Below are positions 47,403 to 57,049 of a stretch of DNA of 64,000 nucleotides, in pieces (the stretch's first letter is position 1; each line of letters starts with the position of its first letter). Source of the DNA: Phaeosaccion multiseriatum (Eukaryota > Protista > Ochrophyta, other classes); contig OZ218954.1 in assembly GCA_965112735.1 (NCBI GenBank), positions 620,001 through 684,000 on the forward strand, in the 5' to 3' direction. The notes under the pieces were generated by a model. That model had not been told where the DNA came from. It saw only the letters and a program-made list of their open reading frames with translations, and ran no database searches. Made by a program: the position numbers and the translations under genes.

Positions 47403-47800
47403 AGGAGGAGGAGGAGGAGGAGGAGGAGGAGGAGGAGGAGGAGGAGGAGGAGGAGGAGGAGGAGGAGGAGGAGGAGGAGGAGGAGGAGGAGGAGGAGGAG
47501 GAGGAGGAGGAGGAGGAGGAGGAGGAGGAGGAGGAGGAGGAGGAGGAGGAGGAGGAGGAGGAGGAGGAGGAGGAGGAGGAGGAGGAGGAGGAGGAGGAGG
47601 AGGAGGAGGAGGAGGAGGAGGAGGAGGAGGAGGAGGAGGAGGAGGAGGAGGAGGAGGAGGAGGAGGAGGAGGAGGAGGAGGAGGAGGAGGAGGAGGAGGA
47701 GGAGGAGGAGGAGGAGGAGGAGGAGGAGGAGGAAGAGGAGGAGGAGGAGGAGGAAGAGCAGCAGGAGGAGGAGGAGGAGGAGGAGGAGGAGGAGGAGGAG
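47403..47800 (+). repeat. Long (GGA)n microsatellite
   Basis: ~400 bp nearly pure GGA, intergenic. Confidence 0.95.
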
Positions 47801-48564
47801 AGGAGGAGCAGCAGGAGGAGAGGATGATGATGGTCTTGCTTGTAAACTGCTCACGCACTCCGAAATCAGTTCTCGAAGATGTCTATATTTCATGTAGGAC
47901 GGCAGGTATAAATATATGAGGAAAGCGTTTCTGCCCGCTTGGGTTTGTGAGGCTGGGCAAGAAACCCGTAGGAGGGCGTGCTGCTCACATGTGATGATAA
48001 GATGCTCTGAAGTGCTCTGCCTGCACTGTCTCGTGGGGGTTCGGCGGAGGGTTGTAGGTCCCTGTCTGTTGCCGAACCCAATGTCGATTTCGGATACCGA
48101 CCTCGGCCTCGCTATCGATTTCGGATATCGACATTGATATTGATGATATCGAGTCGATAGAGATAGAACAGGGACCTCCCCTCTTCCGCACCCAACATGG
48201 TGCATGGACGGGACAGAGGAAGCAAGAAGACAATGCTGTCTAAGGAGTAGAGCTACATGCAACACACTGAAAGACGCCTCACTGCCCCCCTCCTACTGCC
48301 ACCCACGGTCGTCCCCGGCCCCACCCCGATGGGTTACGGTTTCATTTTGGTCCGACGGTGTCTGACGGGCTACGGTTTCATTTTGTTCCGACGGTTTCTT
48401 CCGCCCCCCGCTTGGGTTCGGCTTGGGTTCGGCAGCCCTCCCAGGTTCCGCTTTCCTAAGGACAGTACCTGCCGCCTTAGCCGCCAGTTTCATGCTTTCC
48501 TGCACACTTTCTCTCAGTTTGTGCTAAAGAGGAGAGAGCGAGCTGTTCACAGTGCTTGCGGGTT

Positions 48565-51500
48565 ATGAATGCGACAAAAGTGTTGAATGTGCTCAAAGGG
48601 CAGCGCAGAATACTCACCGCCTTCTTCCACGCCACGGGCGGACCCGATTGGGATAACCAGACAGTAAGGAACGAGAAGGACCTTCCTGTGTGGAAATGGT
48701 CCGGAGTGAGGGTAGAGAATGGCTATGTAGTGGAGCTTCAACTGCGATGGAAGAAACTCAAAGGTGAGAGAGACGTAGGTCTCTACAGTGTTCGGGAAGG
48801 ACGGAGCAGAGCCGAGCGAGAGAAAGCGTGAGCCAGCGGCATCTGACACAATCTTCCATTCGCGTTCCTTGAACTCAGTTTAAAGCGTTTCCCTCCCATC
48901 CTTAGGGAGCATTCCACCCGAGCTCGGAGCTCTGGAGAACCTTGTGGGACTGGCCCTCGACAGGAACGAGCTCACAGGTGCGCGAGCCCCTTCGCGTCCC
49001 TTCCCTTTCACTTGATATGAGTATGACCAAAAAAACTTTCCTTCAATACTCAGGGAGCATTCCACCCGAGCTTGGAAGTCTGGAGAAGCTTGTCTATTTG
49101 GACCTCTCTGACAACGAGCTCATTGGTAAGTGGCACGCGTACCCGTTCGCGTCCCTTGGACTCGATCTCAGTGTGACCAAATAACGTTCCCTCCGATACA
49201 TAGGTCCTATTCCCGCTGCCCTCATTGGGCGTTTGGGAATACAGATCACCAGTTACAGGTTCGAGGAGAATGCGTTGAGTCTTCCTGAAGACATCAACAC
49301 CCAAACACATCTGACCAAGCTCGATTTATCCCGTCAGGGCCTTGTAGGTAGGTGGGACGCGTCCCTTTGACTTGATATCACTCTGGCCAAAAGTCATTCC
49401 TCCAAGCTAACCCCAGCCAGGGAGCATTCCTCGCGAAATTGGAGGGCTGCGAGAACTTGCTTGAGAGTTTGCCCCTCTTTTGCAGCTACCTCAGTGGTAG
49501 ACTAAGTGTACACGTACCCGTCCGCGCCTCTATCAAATGACCGAAAGAACTCTCCTCCCATCCGCAGGGAGCATTCCCAAGGAGTTGGGAGGTCTTCAAA
49601 ACCTTCAGCAACTACGACTCCGCGAGAACAAGCTCACCGGTGAGTGGTACGCACACCGTTCGCGTCCCTTTCACTTGATATGAGTGTAAACACAAGAATT
49701 CCCCTCCCATCCTTAGGGAGCATTCCACCCGAGCTCGGAGCTCTGGAGAAGCTTGAAGAATTGGCCCTCAACGTGAACGAGCTCACAGGTGCGCGAACCC
49801 CTTCGCGTCCCTTCCCTTTCACTTGATATGAGTGTGACCAAAAAAACTTTCCTTCAATACTCAGGGAGCATTCCACCCGAGCTTGGAAGTCTGGAGAAGC
49901 TTGACTATTTGGACCTCTCCGACAACGAGCTCATTGGTAAGTGGCACCCGTACCCGTTCGCGTCCCTTGGACTCGATCTCAGTGTGACCAAATATCGTTC
50001 CCTCCGATACATAGGTCCTATTCCCGCTGCCCTCATTGGGCGTTTGGGAACCCAGATCACCATTTACGAGTTCACGAAGAGGAGAGGTTCATTTATAGCC
50101 GACAGCAATGCGTTAAGTCTTCCTGAAGACATCGGCACCCAGACACATCTGACTGAGCTCGATTTGTCCGATCAGGGCCTTGTAGGTAGGTGGGACGCGT
50201 CCCTTTGACTTGATATCAGTCTGGCCAAAAGTCATTGTTCCTCCCAGCCAACCCCAGCCAGGCAGGGAGCATTCCTCGCGAGATTGGAGGGCTGCGAGAA
50301 CTTGAGAGTCTGCCCAACACCCTCTTTTGCAGCCACCTCAGTGGTAGACTAAGTGTACACGTACCCGTCCGCGCCTCTATCAAATGACCGAAAGAACTCT
50401 CCTCCCATCTGCAGGAAACATTCCCAAGGAGTTGGGAGGTCTTCAAAACCTTCAGCAGCTACATCTCGGCCAGAACAGCCTCACGGGTGAGTGGTACGCG
50501 TACCCGTTCGCATCCCTTTCATTTGATACTAGTGTGACCGAAAGAACTTTCCTCCCATCTGCAGGAAACATTCCCAAGGAGTTGGGAGGTCTTCAAAACC
50601 TTCAGCAGCTACATCTCGGCCAGAACAGCCTCACGGGTGAGTGGTACGCGTACCCGTTCGCATCCCTTTCATTTGATACTAGTGTGACCGAAAGAACTCT
50701 CCTCCCATCTGCAGGAACCATTCCCAAGGAGTTGGGAGGTCTTCAAAACCTTCAGCAACTACGACTCAGCGAGAACGAGCTCACAGGTGAGTGGTAAGCG
50801 CACCCGTTCGCGTCTCTTTCACTTGATATGAGTATAACCAAAAGAATTTTCCTCCCATCCGCAGGGAGCATTCCACCCGAGCTTGGAAGTCTGGGGAAGC
50901 TCGAGGGTTTCGACTTCTCCAACAACAAGCTCACTGGTGCGTGGTAGGCGCACCCCTTCGCGTCCCTTTCAATGATATGAGTATAACCAAAAGAGCTCCT
51001 ATCCGCAGGGAGCATTCCACCCGAGCTTGGAAGTCTGGAGAAGCTCGAGATGTTGCACTTCTCCGACAACGAGCTCACCGGTGAGTGGTGCGCGAAGCGT
51101 TCGCTTCCATTTGTCTTGATACTCCCCGGAGGGTGTCGTGAACACGCATGGATGCGGAGGCCCTCTGTGCCTACTACTACCTGCTTGCTCTCATATCTGT
51201 GGGCCCTCTGTGCCTACTACCTGTTTGCTTTCATGTCTGCTGCCACGTACCCCAGTATACTTGTGCCCCATTTAACGTGACTCTGTCTCTCCTCATCGTT
51301 GCTTGTCTCGGGGGGTTGGAATGATTGGTCCGGCCTTGCTTACAGAGTTTCCGGCCGTGGTGGCAGAGAAGCTCGGACCTCTAAATTTGCTCGAGAGGCT
51401 TTCCACATCCGGCAACCCATGGTCTAGCCCCCCTGGGGATGTCGTGGCGCAAGGGTGGGAGGCGATCATGGCATGGTGGAGAGACATCGAGGCCTCGGGC

Positions 51501-54500
51501 TCCGTCAAGTCCAGCAAGGTCAAGGTGGTGCTCGTCGGTGCTGGCACGGCGGGGAAGACGAGTCTGATAAGGGCAGTCACCGGCAAAGGGGAGGATCTCC
51601 CCACAGAAAAGGAGCGGACCATCGGGGTGGAGCGGAGGAAGACAGTGCGGGTCTCTGACTGCTTCAAGAGGCACTACCCTATTGGCGGGGTGGAGAAGTA
51701 CCTGGAAGGGCTGGCGGCTGAGGAAGAGGCACGAGCGGCGATTCGGGCAACGGCACAGGACCTCGGCTTGGTAATGTGGGACTTTGCCGGGCAGGAAGCG
51801 TACTTCAGCCACCACCAGACCTTCCTCACCGCCCACGCGCTCTACGTGCTCGTCGTGGACCTGCCCGCCTTCCTGGAGAGGGACAGTGAGGCGCGGGATG
51901 CAGCAGTACACCAAGTGGTGCATGACGACTTCGCCCACGAGCAGGAGATCTCGCTTTGGCTGAGCATGCTCGACATGCGAGTGAAGGACTGTCACGTGGT
52001 GGTTGTGGCGACGAAGACGGGCGGGATGACCGACAAGGAAAGGATGCTCGGTCAGAAGCGGGTTACGGAAGCAGTCACGGCCGCAGCCACGCGACTGAAC
52101 AAACGGAGGGAGGAGTCCGCCAGGGCGCGGAAAGTAAAGGGTTCCTCAGGCGTCACTGTTTTAAAGTGTGCGGATGGTCAGCAAGTCGCTGTGCTGATGG
52201 ACAGTAAGGAGAAGTGTGGTGTCGGAGAGGTGTTGCTGCAGTTTACGAGAGCTGTGCACGACAAGCCTATCGCCTTCCCCAGTGTGGGTGCGTCTATACC
52301 GAAGAGCTGGAGCGAGGCTATGGACTTCCTCCAAACACAGGCCGAGGCCCGCAGCTTCGTGGCGTGGAGTGAGGTGGTGCAGGAGTGGGAAAAGCGGAAG
52401 GAGGCAGAGGAGGCAAGCAGCCTTCTAGGGGAGGAGTCCCCCATGCTTACAAAGGGAGAAGGGATGAAGGAAGGAGGAGGAACCCCTGAGCAGATACTGA
52501 GGCAAGCGGCGTATCTCCTGGAGCGGCAGGGGACGATGCTCTTCACCAACGGGAAGGTAGTGCTGCACCTCAAGCCGGAGAGGATCATTGACCTTCTCAA
52601 GCCCATCGCAGACCACCGCATCACGACGGAGGGGAGGGCCTTCTGGAAGCCCAGGATGAAGGACTACTTGACAGAGACCGGCGAGTGGAGCTCACGGGCG
52701 ACAGAGGAATTGTTGAGAAAGTTCTTTGAGCTTCAGGACTTGGGCATCCTGAACGAACAAGTGCTCGACTTTCTGTGGCTGGCGTGGACACCGAGTGGAA
52801 ACGAGGGGAGGAGGGGCAGCAGCAGCAGCACCAGCAGCAGCAGCAGCGGCACCAGCTCGACACTCGAAGGGCGGCAGGCCCAAGTCACGGCTGAAGAGGG
52901 CTCCTTTCTCTCCGAGTTGCGGGGCCAGGATCAACACGCCCAAAACAAGCGGAAACTCATGCGCCGGCTGCTGGTGGAGAGCGGGGCGCTTTATGCACAT
53001 CTCGACGAAGCCAAGAGCGGGAAGGAGGAGGTGGAGGAAAAGAGCGGGAAGGGAAAGGTCGAGGTTGGGAAGACTCGATACTGTGCTCCTTCTCTGCTCG
53101 AAGCCTGGGTGGACCAAGGGGAGCTTCAGACGGCTTTCTACCTCTCCACAGGGCAGAAGATGAGCCGACTCTCCATCTCCATGCCTGGTCAGCCCTTCAT
53201 TCCGCCCGGCCTCATGCCTCGCATTGTGGCGGCGTGTATGAGGGAGGCTGAGCGCGACAGTATTGAGTCCCGTGGGTCTTGCCGAGTGACCTTGTGCTGG
53301 CGCTATGGCGTTGTGCTTTACTGGGGCACCGAAAGAGTGCTCATTTACCACTCAAAGGCAAGCATCAAGGAAAGCAGCAGCATCGGCCCCTCGAGCACGA
53401 AAGATAACCACCGGAGGCAAAGCCACCAACGCCGCAACAGCAACGCTGGCTCAAACAGCAGCAGCAGCAACAGCAGAGGCAGCGTCGCGGGGGGCGGGGC
53501 TGTCGTAGAGTGGTGTGTTCTCGGAGACAACGCCGGCATGTGCGATGCGAAAGCGAATGGCGTCGTGCGCGAGTGCGTGTTGGATGTCATGGATACCAAC
53601 TTCAAAGGGATGGACTATGAAGAGGACTTGCCCGACGAAACCAAGTGCACGATAAAGGCCGCGCTGCACTCGCTGGAGCAGCACATAGATGTCCGCCTGG
53701 ACATCATCGAGAGCAAAGTGGACGGGATTGTGGAGGCGACCCGAGGCATCGAGAGCTTCATCCGCTTGAGCTGCGAAAAGGACATGCCGTACCCTGCCCT
53801 CGCGGTGCTTCTCCCGGAGGGACATCCAATGCTGAGCAACGGAGGATTCGCGGGTGCTGAGGAGGGAAAGAACACACCTCCGGGGGGTGGAGGCAACCAC
53901 CAAAAGGGTCTCGATCTCTACCAGAAGCGAACGTGGGAGTGGGCCAAAAGGAAAGCGGTTAACACTGTGGCTAGGAAGTACCGCCTCTTCTTTCTGTGCT
54001 CGCACGACCTTAGTTTGGTGCCCACTGGGCCAGACGGGAAGGGATACGAGGTGCCCATGCCCAAAGAATGGCTCAAGAAGGCCGCACCCTTGCTTAAGCT
54101 GTCGCTGCTGGCCCTCAAGGTCGCCGCCAACTGTACTCTGCGCATTGATCTGCCTATTGACGGACTCTTTGAGGCTCTGAACGAGACTGTTGTGGAAGGA
54201 ATGAGCGAGAAGATCGCAGAGCGCATCGATGAAGCTTTCACGGGGGTGGACGCCTCGCTAGACCGCATCATGCAAGAGGCGATGCAAGCGACCCACGCCC
54301 CTCCAAAGGGGGAGGAGGATGGAGGAGATAGGAAGCTGCGGCAGCCCTTCTCTCGTGAGGGCGTCGACTTCGGGCCCGCTTACGACGCGTATCTGGCCTT
54401 CCTCAAGGCGAAGGTGCCTGTGCTGGACAAGGCCCATCACGGCACGAATATGGTGCTTTTGAAGGGAGGCACCGAGGACTCGTGGGCGTGGGTGAGGAAG

Positions 54501-54735
54501 GCAAATGCGAAGGAATGGGAGAAGACACACGATGGCACAGGCGCAAGAGCACAAAGTGCGGACAGTGGTGGTGGTGCTTTCGCGCCTTCGGCCCTCAATG
54601 GGGCTGCTGACAGCGTCGTAGGAGGAGGAGGGGGAGGAGGAGGAGGAGGAGGAGGAGGAGGAGGAGGAGGAGGAGGAGGAGGAGGAGGAGGAGGAGGAGG
54701 AGGAGGAGGAGGAGGAGGAGGAGGAGGAGGAGGAG

Positions 54736-54770
<35 letters not shown>

Positions 54771-55531
54771 GGAGGAGGAGGAGGAGGAGGAGGAGGAGGA
54801 GGAGGAGGAGGAGGAGGAGGAGGAGGAGGAGGAGGAGGAGGAGGAGGCCAAATTGATGGTGTTGTGGCGGCAGCAGCGGGCTCACCGACCCCTCCACCTC
54901 AGGAACATCAGCAGGCGGGGACAGGAGGAGCTCCGACCGGAGAAGAGGGGGAGGGGCAGGACATTCGGAGGTGGCTGCAGGAGGTGAGCTTCATCGCCAA
55001 GAGAATCGACCCCGTGGTGCAGCTGCTCGTGAGTGAGGACTGCGACTCCCTGGAAATGCTTGACAGCTTCGACTCGGACGACCTAAAAAAACTTTGCTGA
55101 AGGAGGCAGGCATCCTCCAAAAGGGTTCCATGAGTTCGTTCATGACACACTTTGAGCGTCGGAAGGAGCGGGCAAGGAGTCATGAGCGCAGCGGCGTTTC
55201 TCCTCCCTCTCCTTCTCAAGGGACCGCACGGCCGCTGTCGCGTGACGAGCCACCGATGGCTACGGCCACGCTGCGCCTGTCGCAGTCGGACACTACGGTG
55301 GGGGTGGAGACGCCCCCCGCGAGTGGAGCAATTGGGGGACCAGCAGCAGCAGTTGATGGTACAGCAGCAGCAGCGGGAGGCCACTCTGACTTAGATACTT
55401 GTTCTTCTGCTCCGTATGAGAAGGCCGACGGGGGTGGCATCTTGCGAAGGTTATCTCGTACCATCAGGGGACCCAGAGGAGGAGGAGGAGGAGGAGGAGA
55501 AGGGAAAGTATTTGTCGCAGCGGAGGAGTAA
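48565..55531 (+). CDS. LRR-Roc-COR (ROCO) GTPase without kinase domain; C-terminal SAM-like segment interrupted by a frameshift
   Basis: LRR N-cap exon 48565-48763 (AFFHATGGPDW...WSGVRVENGYVVELQL), 14 LRR cassettes 48906-51080, large exon from 51346. Contains GNPWSSPP, P-loop GAGTAGKTS, RTIGV, WDFAGQEAYFSHHQTFL, a COR-like region and YRLFFLCSHD...GYEVPMPKEWLKKAAP. Stop at 55100; the -1 frame continues to 55531. Confidence 0.9.
48890..51090 (+). repeat. Tandem LRR exon-intron cassette array (unit ~150 bp; ~811-bp five-cassette block duplicated)
   Basis: 72-nt phase-1 exons at 48906, 49054, 49568, 49717, 49865, 50415, 50565, 50715, 50865, 51009. Longer cassettes at 49204 (144 nt) and 50015 (171 nt). 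Degenerate cassettes at 49421 and 50266. Introns share the consensus gtgagtggtacgcgtacccgttcgcgtccctttcacttgatatgagtgtgacc...cctcccatccgcag. Confidence 0.95.
49421..49496 (+). pseudogene. Inactivated LRR cassette (pseudo-exon)
   Basis: 76 nt rather than 72 because of a CTTG duplication (gaaCTTGCTTGagag). It reads GSIPREIGGLRELA-stop and has a weak donor, GTAGAC. Confidence 0.8.
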
Positions 55532-55982
55532 AGCAATAGCTTAACGGAACTGCTTAGCTTAACGGAACTGCTTAGCTTAACGGAACGGCTTAGCTAGGGT
55601 GGGGACGTTGCCATCCGACCCTCGTGCCAGCCCCAAGTGCTGCAGATGGGCCAGAGACGTGCCGTGCGGGCCGAAGAGGGGGCAGACACAGTTGAAAGAG
55701 AACAACAGCAGCCGTAAGGGGGAGAGAGATTCACGGCAAGACGTGCGACAGCCAAGCCAAGCCAAGCGACGAAGGAGGCCTTTGGTATGGTTTTGTACAC
55801 CGAGTAACCTCCCAGTTTCTGATAGTTGTTGACACATACATTAAAAGAACTGCCACATCGCCTCCCCTCCTCCCGGAGGTCCGAGTCGATGTGTCGATTA
55901 CTCAACATTGATCCGACTGGTCTAGTTGGCGGTCACGTCTCGGAAACGTGCCCAGCCCCCCCTACCAGCTTCTCCCTCCCCC

Positions 55983-56830
55983 TCCCTCCTCCTCCTCCTC
56001 CTCCTCCTCCTCCTCCTCCTCCTCCTCCTCCTCCTCCTCCTCCTCCTCCTCCTCCTCCTCCTCCTCCTCCTCCTCCTCCTCCTCCTCCTCCTCCTCCTCC
56101 TCCTCCTCCTCCTCCTCCTCCTCCTCCTCCTCCTCCTCCTCCTCCTCCTCCTCCTCCTCCTCCTCCTCCTCCTCCTCCTCCTCCTCCTCCTCCTCCTCCT
56201 CCTCCTCCTCCTCCTCCTCCTCCTCCTCCTCCTCCTCCTCCTCCTCCTCCTCCTCCTCCTCCTCCTCCTCCTCCTCCTCCTCCTCCTCCTCCTCCTCCTC
56301 CTCCTCCTCCTCCTCCTCCTCCTCCTCCTCCTCCTCCTCCTCCTCCTCCTCCTCCTCCTCCTCCTCCTCCTCCTCCTCCTCCTCCTCCTCCTCCTCCTCC
56401 TCCTCCTCCTCCCCCTCCCTCTCCTCCTCCTCCTCCTCCTCCTCCTTTACGGAGGGTAGGAGGGAGAGTAGGAGGGAAGGTAGGAGGCAGAGGGGGAGGG
56501 AGGGAAGGTGGAAGGGAGCGAGGGAGGAAGGGCGGGAGGGAGGGAGGGATGGAGGGAGGGAGGGAGGGAGGGAGGGAGGGAGGGAGGGAGGGAGGGAGGG
56601 AGGGAGGGAGGGAGGGAGGGAGGGAGGGAGGGAGGGAGGGAGGGAGGGAGGGAGGGAGGGAGGGAGGGAGGGAGGGAGGGAGGGAGGGAGGGAGGGAGGG
56701 AGGGAGGGAGGGAGGGAGGGAGGGAGGGAGGGAGGGAGGGAGGGAGGGAGGGAGGGAGGGAGGGAGGGAGGGAGGGAGGGAGGGAGGGAGGGAGGGAGGG
56801 AGGGAGGGAGGGAGGGAGGGAGGGAGGGAG
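55983..56830 (+). repeat. Long (CCT)n tract followed by (GGGA)n tract
   Basis: (CCT)n 55983-56446, (GGGA)n ~56550-56830, intergenic. Confidence 0.95.
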
Positions 56831-57049
56831 ACCTTTACTCCGCCAGAGGAGAGACGCCGCGAGCAGGCTACATCATCCTTCCTTCCCCAGCCACTACCCA
56901 CAGCACGCGCTCAAAGTCTGCTCAAAGGCCTTCAAAGATGGCTCAAATCGGCTTCAGGGGGACCCTCAACCCCGAAGGTACAGGACGAACGGCCCTAAAA
57001 ATAATATTATTTATAAAAAAGTGTTTACAAATACTACACATTACGCAGG

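Follow-up and report, generated by a model that had tools for sequence, protein, structure and literature searches.

In the window, by which we mean the whole stretch of 64,000 nucleotides analysed, a gene with an array of short LRR exons carries two exon copies that differ from each other more than do the introns following them. The preliminary description of this DNA placed the differences at the exposed x positions of LxxLxLxxN and suggested diversifying selection, or else patchwise gene conversion, on the ligand-binding face. The locus raises the question of which process made the exons diverge and whether the introns next to them are a fair yardstick. The reading that we consider probable is a tandem block duplication with diversifying selection at exposed codons, in which the scaffold is under purifying selection, the introns are conserved and some recombination takes place.

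The LRR-Roc gene and its cassette exons

The gene that begins at position 48565 of the forward strand encodes an LRR-Roc (ROCO) GTPase of the type known from brown algae, and the stretch described here is its sensor end. Fourteen short exons lie between exon 1 and the large last exon. Ten of them are exactly 72 nt long, with AG/GT flanks and an open frame; the product of each is a single LRR of the form xIPxxLGxLxxLxxLxLxxNxLx. These are the "type I LRR exons" of brown-algal ROCO genes (PMC3341825). In each cassette exon the first two bases complete a Gly codon and the last base begins another (phase 1-1), and the same phase is kept at both ends of the array, exon 1 being 199 nt long and the last exon also starting in phase 1. 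This symmetry permits the gain, loss or skipping of cassettes without a change of reading frame. The introns between cassettes are typically 76-78 nt long. The features, all on the forward strand, are as follows.

48565..48763 (+): exon 1, start codon and N-terminal cap ahead of the LRR array; 199 nt, ends in phase 1, GT donor at 48764, as read from the sequence
48906..48977 (+): type I LRR exon E2 (SIPPELGALENLVGLALDRNELT), opens duplicated block A; 72 nt, AG/GT, phase 1-1
48978..49053 (+): intron after E2, member of the conserved intron family; 76 nt, 2/76 differences to 49789-49864
49054..49125 (+): LRR exon E3 (…VYLDLSDNELI); 2/72 differences to 49865-49936
49204..49347 (+): irregular 144-nt exon E4; its duplicate, 50015-50185, has 171 nt, with a 27-nt indel and 14 substitutions
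49421..49496 (+): dead cassette E5; 76 nt, frameshift and in-frame stop in translation
49568..49639 (+): LRR exon E6 (…LRLRENKLT), closes block A; 5 differences to 50715-50786, 10 to its positional partner 50415-50486
49717..50486 (+): duplicated block B, exons 49717-49788, 49865-49936, 50015-50185, 50266-50343 and 50415-50486 (the last is E11)
50565..50636 (+): LRR exon E12, identical to E11 (0/72); following intron 1/78
50715..51080 (+): last three LRR exons, 50715-50786 (E13), 50865-50936 and 51009-51080
51346..55100 (+): large last exon with the Roc GTPase domain; ORF 51303-55100, a frame of ~1250 codons

The dead cassette E5 must be skipped, since the reading frame would otherwise fail; its counterpart in block B (50266-50343, 78 nt) is open. 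E12 is a very recent 150-bp tandem copy. The Roc domain of the last exon was recognized by Pfam (PF08477, E=7e-12, 46.1 bits against a cut-off of 27). No Pfam COR match at E<=0.01 followed it; brown-algal COR domains are reportedly missed by standard scans (PMC11378527). The best match of the Roc-COR exon in a word-based protein search was a bacterial COR-domain protein with only 26% identity, and the same search returned no algal relatives. A Pfam search of exon 1 (48565..48763) gave no match.

Simple repeats occur at this locus. Just upstream of the gene, at 47500-47830, there is a run of GGA/GAG trinucleotides that exceeds 330 nt, and a 36-bp tandem repeat (48331-48399, 1.9 copies, 90% identity) is found ~170 bp ahead of the start codon. 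Long poly-Gly, poly-Pro and poly-Ser runs, coding or non-coding, occur at about 54600-54850 and 55950-56900.

Divergence within the tandem duplication

Global alignment showed that two five-exon blocks of ~810 bp, 48889-49700 and 49700-50500, align throughout. Eight of 72 nt differ between the exons that open them, 48906-48977 and 49717-49788; seven of these differences lie in amino-acid-changing codons and all eight in the beta-strand half (exon nt 35 to 58), as had been described. The codon changes from the first copy to the second are N12K, V14E, G15E, L16L (silent), D19N and R20V. The introns that follow (48978-49053 and 49789-49864) differ at only 2 of 76 nt, also in agreement with the earlier count. 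Eight differences fall within a single 24-nt window in 0.6% of random placements (P=0.006).

Taken in block order, the exon pairs differ at 8/72, 2/72, 14/144 (plus the 27-nt indel), 3/72 (plus 10 indel nt) and 10/72 positions, and the internal introns of the block at 2/76, 2/78, 3/73 and 1/71. Pooled, this amounts to 37/432 (8.6%) for exons against 8/298 (2.7%) for internal introns (Fisher P=0.0009); the intron after the fifth exon pair differs at 14/76. A similar trend had been claimed for the other cassette pairs, and there the picture is uneven. The VYLDLSD/DYLDLSD pair differs at only 2/72 nt, the same as its introns, and the LRLRENK/LHLGQNS pair is a recombinant mosaic and no simple duplicate, E6 being closer to 50715-50786.

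The three canonical exon pairs have 19 in-frame differences (20 nt when the split Gly codon is included), and 13 of these 19 fall in 15 exposed codons. Exposed-codon pN is 0.26, compared with pN 0.033 and pS 0.05 in the rest of the exon and 0.027 in introns, so that the rest of the exon evolves about like the introns. Within the window alone, the exposed-codon ratio of ~2.3 relative to silent sites is not significant (P=0.10-0.19), and whole-exon pN/pS is 0.67. Silent exon divergence in the duplicated block (10.5/81.8) itself exceeds intron divergence (8/298, P=0.001); part of this excess is due to multi-nucleotide changes in exposed codons. Codons changed at two nucleotides are frequent (2/6 in the 48906-48977 pair, 4/10 in the long exon) and are compatible with templated replacement as well as with several hits on the same few selected codons.

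Mis-joined repeats could in principle turn non-allelic or chimeric copies into apparent duplicates: assembly is difficult where tandem units of 150 and 810 bp are 92-100% identical, and E11 and E12 do not differ at all. Such an assembly artefact is nevertheless very improbable, since the differences between the blocks are ordered and codon-specific, indels are in frame, splice sites are intact throughout and more than 20 loci share this architecture.

Conservation of the cassette introns

One exon-plus-intron unit was used as a BLAST query against the whole 67-Mb, 22-contig assembly, in which the window lies on contig C5. Cassette arrays were detected on at least nine contigs, and in many matches the intron was better covered than the exon. 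We fetched 24 loci and extracted 317 cassettes in 25 loci, 276 of them with unique exons. We counted 307 occurrences of the intron core in the assembly and none in the reversed control, which indicates that most of the cassette family was sampled.

Ungapped pairwise differences were calculated for 97 cassettes with 77-nt introns. They average 0.18 for whole introns and 0.158 for the intron interior without splice signals, compared with 0.34 for exons and 0.40 for fourfold degenerate sites. Across the family, introns are thus 2.2 times more conserved than fourfold sites. Their rate of change being less than half that of silent exon sites, the introns are unusable as a neutral reference in this cassette family, and the contrast between exons and introns overstates exon acceleration roughly twofold.

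Two causes of the intron similarity were considered and rejected. Local concerted evolution or homogenisation does not account for most of it, because intron distance is nearly the same for neighbouring cassettes (0.142), within arrays (0.146) and between chromosomes (0.161). An ascertainment bias due to the intron in the query was dismissed because loci retrieved with an exon-only query have equally conserved introns. Changes are spread very unevenly over intron sites (variance/mean 9.3), a few sites being as fast as silent sites and most being nearly fixed, and such strong heterogeneity is the signature of site-specific constraint. How closely two exons are related says little about the relatedness of their introns: between nearest exon neighbours the intron distance equals the family average, and introns that are almost identical can flank unrelated exons (30/72 differences).

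About 60 of the 77 intron positions are constant across all arrays and chromosomes, well beyond the needs of the 5′ splice site, branch point and polypyrimidine tract. The introns (49640-49716, 50487-50564 and the family consensus) open with GTRAGT followed by GGTACGCGTACC, which in some copies is a 12-nt perfect palindrome; the two most variable intron columns lie inside it. No consensus RNA fold was found in 36 diverse introns, and an Rfam search of the cassette intron matched no family. A metagenome scan with the intron core returned 29 single matches, none with an LRR cassette, and we therefore take these matches to be due to chance.

As to what maintains the introns, they may be dedicated cis-elements, that is, 76-78-nt homology or recognition signals for the in-frame exchange, duplication or skipping of cassettes. 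We consider this improbable; were it true, cassette introns would be a built-in diversification device rather than a product of passive repeat evolution. Whatever its presumed reason, the conservation bears on how cassette shuffling or skipping works.

Probable selection at exposed codons across the cassette family

Over 116 disjoint nearest-neighbour exon pairs, crude counting on 72-nt recombining units, which is distinct from likelihood site models, gave a pN/pS of 2.37 (bootstrap interval 1.84-3.28) for exposed codons 14, 15, 17, 19 and 20, 0.67 for semi-variable codons and 0.27 for scaffold codons. Family-wide, pN at exposed codons is 0.248 and pS is 0.104, the latter being no higher than at other codons. 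Counts of the same crude kind were made on a FastTree phylogeny with parsimony ancestors, with dN taken over global dS and site-wise binomial P values; they were 2.16 at codon 15 (P=0.0065), 2.23 at codon 17 (P=0.006) and 2.69 at codon 20 (P=9e-6). Codon 19 had the second-highest value (2.40), yet its P was 0.099. Sites with P<0.05 were codons 14, 15, 17, 20 and 22, of which 14 and 22 were weaker. Pairs chosen instead by one or both near-identical flanking introns gave exposed pN/pS of 0.6-1.65 with few informative pairs, for which reason the nearest-exon pairs and the tree counts are preferred.

The genome-wide counts therefore place dN/dS at exposed codons above 1, and exposed pN (0.25) also exceeds intron divergence in the same kind of pairs (0.12-0.13). 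The proposal of diversifying selection on the exposed x positions holds when silent sites serve as the baseline; the part of it that leaned on introns overstates the effect. The variable sites are taken to be exposed from canonical LRR geometry and published models, and they would be the ones to contact a ligand.

Silent sites in the exons are partly constrained as well (pS 0.013 at Ile-3), which could inflate pN/pS. In exon nt 1-12, silent positions are almost invariant family-wide (the ATT of Ile-3 has a pi of 0.03), and constraint at the nucleotide level thus continues beyond the intron into the exon. Zambounis et al. mention a miRNA target region predicted in these exons (PMC3341825).

Such constraint opens the way to an explanation without positive selection, in which exposed sites drift under relaxed constraint, introns and many silent sites are held at the nucleotide level by splicing signals or recombination homology, both baselines are too low and omega only appears to exceed 1. 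The excess conservation of introns over fourfold sites and the near-invariant Ile-3 codon speak for it. The fastest silent sites (codons 2, 4, 5, 19 and 21) have pS values of 0.16-0.40, near the exposed pN of 0.13-0.36, and the array does contain a dead cassette. However, exposed pN is above pooled pS with a bootstrap interval that excludes 1, and likelihood site models in two other species recover the same four sites. The downstream frame of 1250 codons is also intact, so the gene is not decaying. On balance, we think relaxed constraint distinctly improbable and retain diversifying selection as the preferred reading.

Recombination between cassettes

E6 (49568-49639) differs from E13 (50715-50786) at 3/36 positions in the 3′ half of the exon and at 1/43 in the first part of the intron. 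The corresponding figures against its positional partner E11 (50415-50486) are 8/36 and 4/43, with 1/71 in the upstream intron. The divergent tract of E11/E12 begins near exon nt 47 and takes in the first 45 nt of the intron; it is of separate ancestry and reflects recombination or conversion rather than selection on point mutations. Gene conversion, which had been offered as the alternative to selection, thus applies to the LRLRENK/LHLGQNS pair. For the 48906-48977/49717-49788 pair no donor was found: none of the 317 cassettes could have supplied either patch, the nearest being 5-7 mismatches off (of 32-36 nt compared), and a BLAST search of the assembly gave best whole-exon matches of 84-86% to these exons. 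A search for third-party donors over all close pairs was uninformative, since close triplets mimic donors.

It is conceivable that conversion or recombination acts patchwise throughout, with clustered differences imported at once from diverged cassettes and break points located in the conserved 5′ half of the exon and in the introns. The E6 tract, with its mid-exon break point, is an instance. In a ~450-bp block common to arrays on contigs C16 and C11, the flanking introns differ at 2/77 and 2/76 and the exon between them at 11 positions, with one 3-nt and three 2-nt codon changes among these. Among pairs with near-identical flanks, 13 of 22 changed codons differ at two or more nucleotides, and copying from a diverged template would give the same two-nucleotide changes; intra- and intergenic recombination has been traced in Ectocarpus (PMC3341825). 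Apart from the missing donors, however, diverged templates would bring silent and replacement changes together, and exposed pS (0.104) is not raised along with pN (0.248). Constraint on introns would by itself also leave near-identical introns around unrelated exons. As the main cause of the pattern, patchwise exchange is in our opinion unlikely.

The ~810-bp five-exon block was duplicated in tandem, and one 150-bp cassette was duplicated again later. According to the selection reading that we favour, changes would since have been kept mainly in five or six codons lining the concave beta-sheet face (the x of LxxLxLxxN), we propose because new binding surfaces were favoured, with the scaffold codons under purifying selection. 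The introns, near-constant across arrays and chromosomes, understate neutral divergence about twofold, and recombination between cassettes adds to the variation, one pair of this gene having a tract of separate ancestry.

Comparison with known LRR systems

Much of this architecture is shared with the LRR-ROCO genes of Ectocarpus, which also have one LRR per 72-nt exon (GxxPxxLxxxxxLxxLxLxxNxL), an array ahead of a Roc GTPase, dead cassettes in the array, and cassette duplication and recombination. There, PAML-selected exon codons 15, 17, 19 and (20) lie on the concave face (Zambounis 2012, PMC3341825). In Saccharina japonica, four sites on the concave face emerged from site models of the ROCO genes, 14, 16, 18 and 19 in 23-residue numbering (Teng 2024, PMC11378527), which are codons 15, 17, 19 and 20 here; LRR exons have 72 bp in both. 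The genome studied here, in contrast to Ectocarpus, is apparently that of another, compact stramenopile alga (67 Mb), with uniform 76-78-nt introns, and the gene has no cassettes on its non-coding strand. The intron phase, called 2 in PMC11378527, is read as 1 here, one base of the Gly codon preceding the intron. Alternative splicing of cassettes has been proposed for brown-algal ROCO genes (PMC11378527). Neither PMC3341825 nor PMC11378527 contains an intron baseline or reports intron conservation, and a literature search on ROCO and conserved introns came back empty.

Because the same sites have been published for Ectocarpus and Saccharina, selection at these codons is supported yet not new, and the gene in the window is an ordinary further example of the known LRR-ROCO system. 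It places the exon-cassette receptor design with a fast-evolving binding face in one more alga, and simple counts in a single genome suffice to recover the published sites. What this locus adds is a warning against introns as a baseline and a cassette of mosaic origin.

The LRRs of plant NLRs and receptor-like proteins belong to the same LxxLxxLxLxxNxLxGxIPxxLG class and have an excess of replacements at the same solvent-exposed beta-strand sites. Plant LRR domains, however, are mostly encoded in long exons, whereas here there is one repeat per exon, and the signalling domain is a Roc GTPase here and NB-ARC or a kinase in plants. Lamprey VLRs likewise consist of LRR cassettes in which the ends are conserved and the binding face varies. 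They are assembled somatically, by cytidine-deaminase-driven copy choice. Here no sign of somatic rearrangement was seen, and the observed events all fit germ-line duplication and recombination, as judged from a single assembly. VLR-like copying over short homology was offered as an analogy by Zambounis et al. (PMC3341825).

Other cassette arrays in the genome

Several other arrays in the assembly have an organization of their own. In many of them (L005, L015, L013, L022 and others) two cassette types alternate, SIPPELGxLxKL…NKLT and then NIPPQLGQLSNLRxLxLxxNxLE, each with its own intron variant, which implies a two-cassette super-repeat of ~298 bp. The array L019 (G000:C10:561000-570999) forms a higher-order tandem repeat (~740 bp), in which 20 intact-looking LRR cassettes of the minus strand are interleaved with 14 of the plus strand. 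Three array copies spaced ~14.5 kb apart (L002/L003/L004, G000:C16:204000-240000) have cassettes and introns that are 100% identical and represent either a very recent segmental triplication or an assembly duplication.
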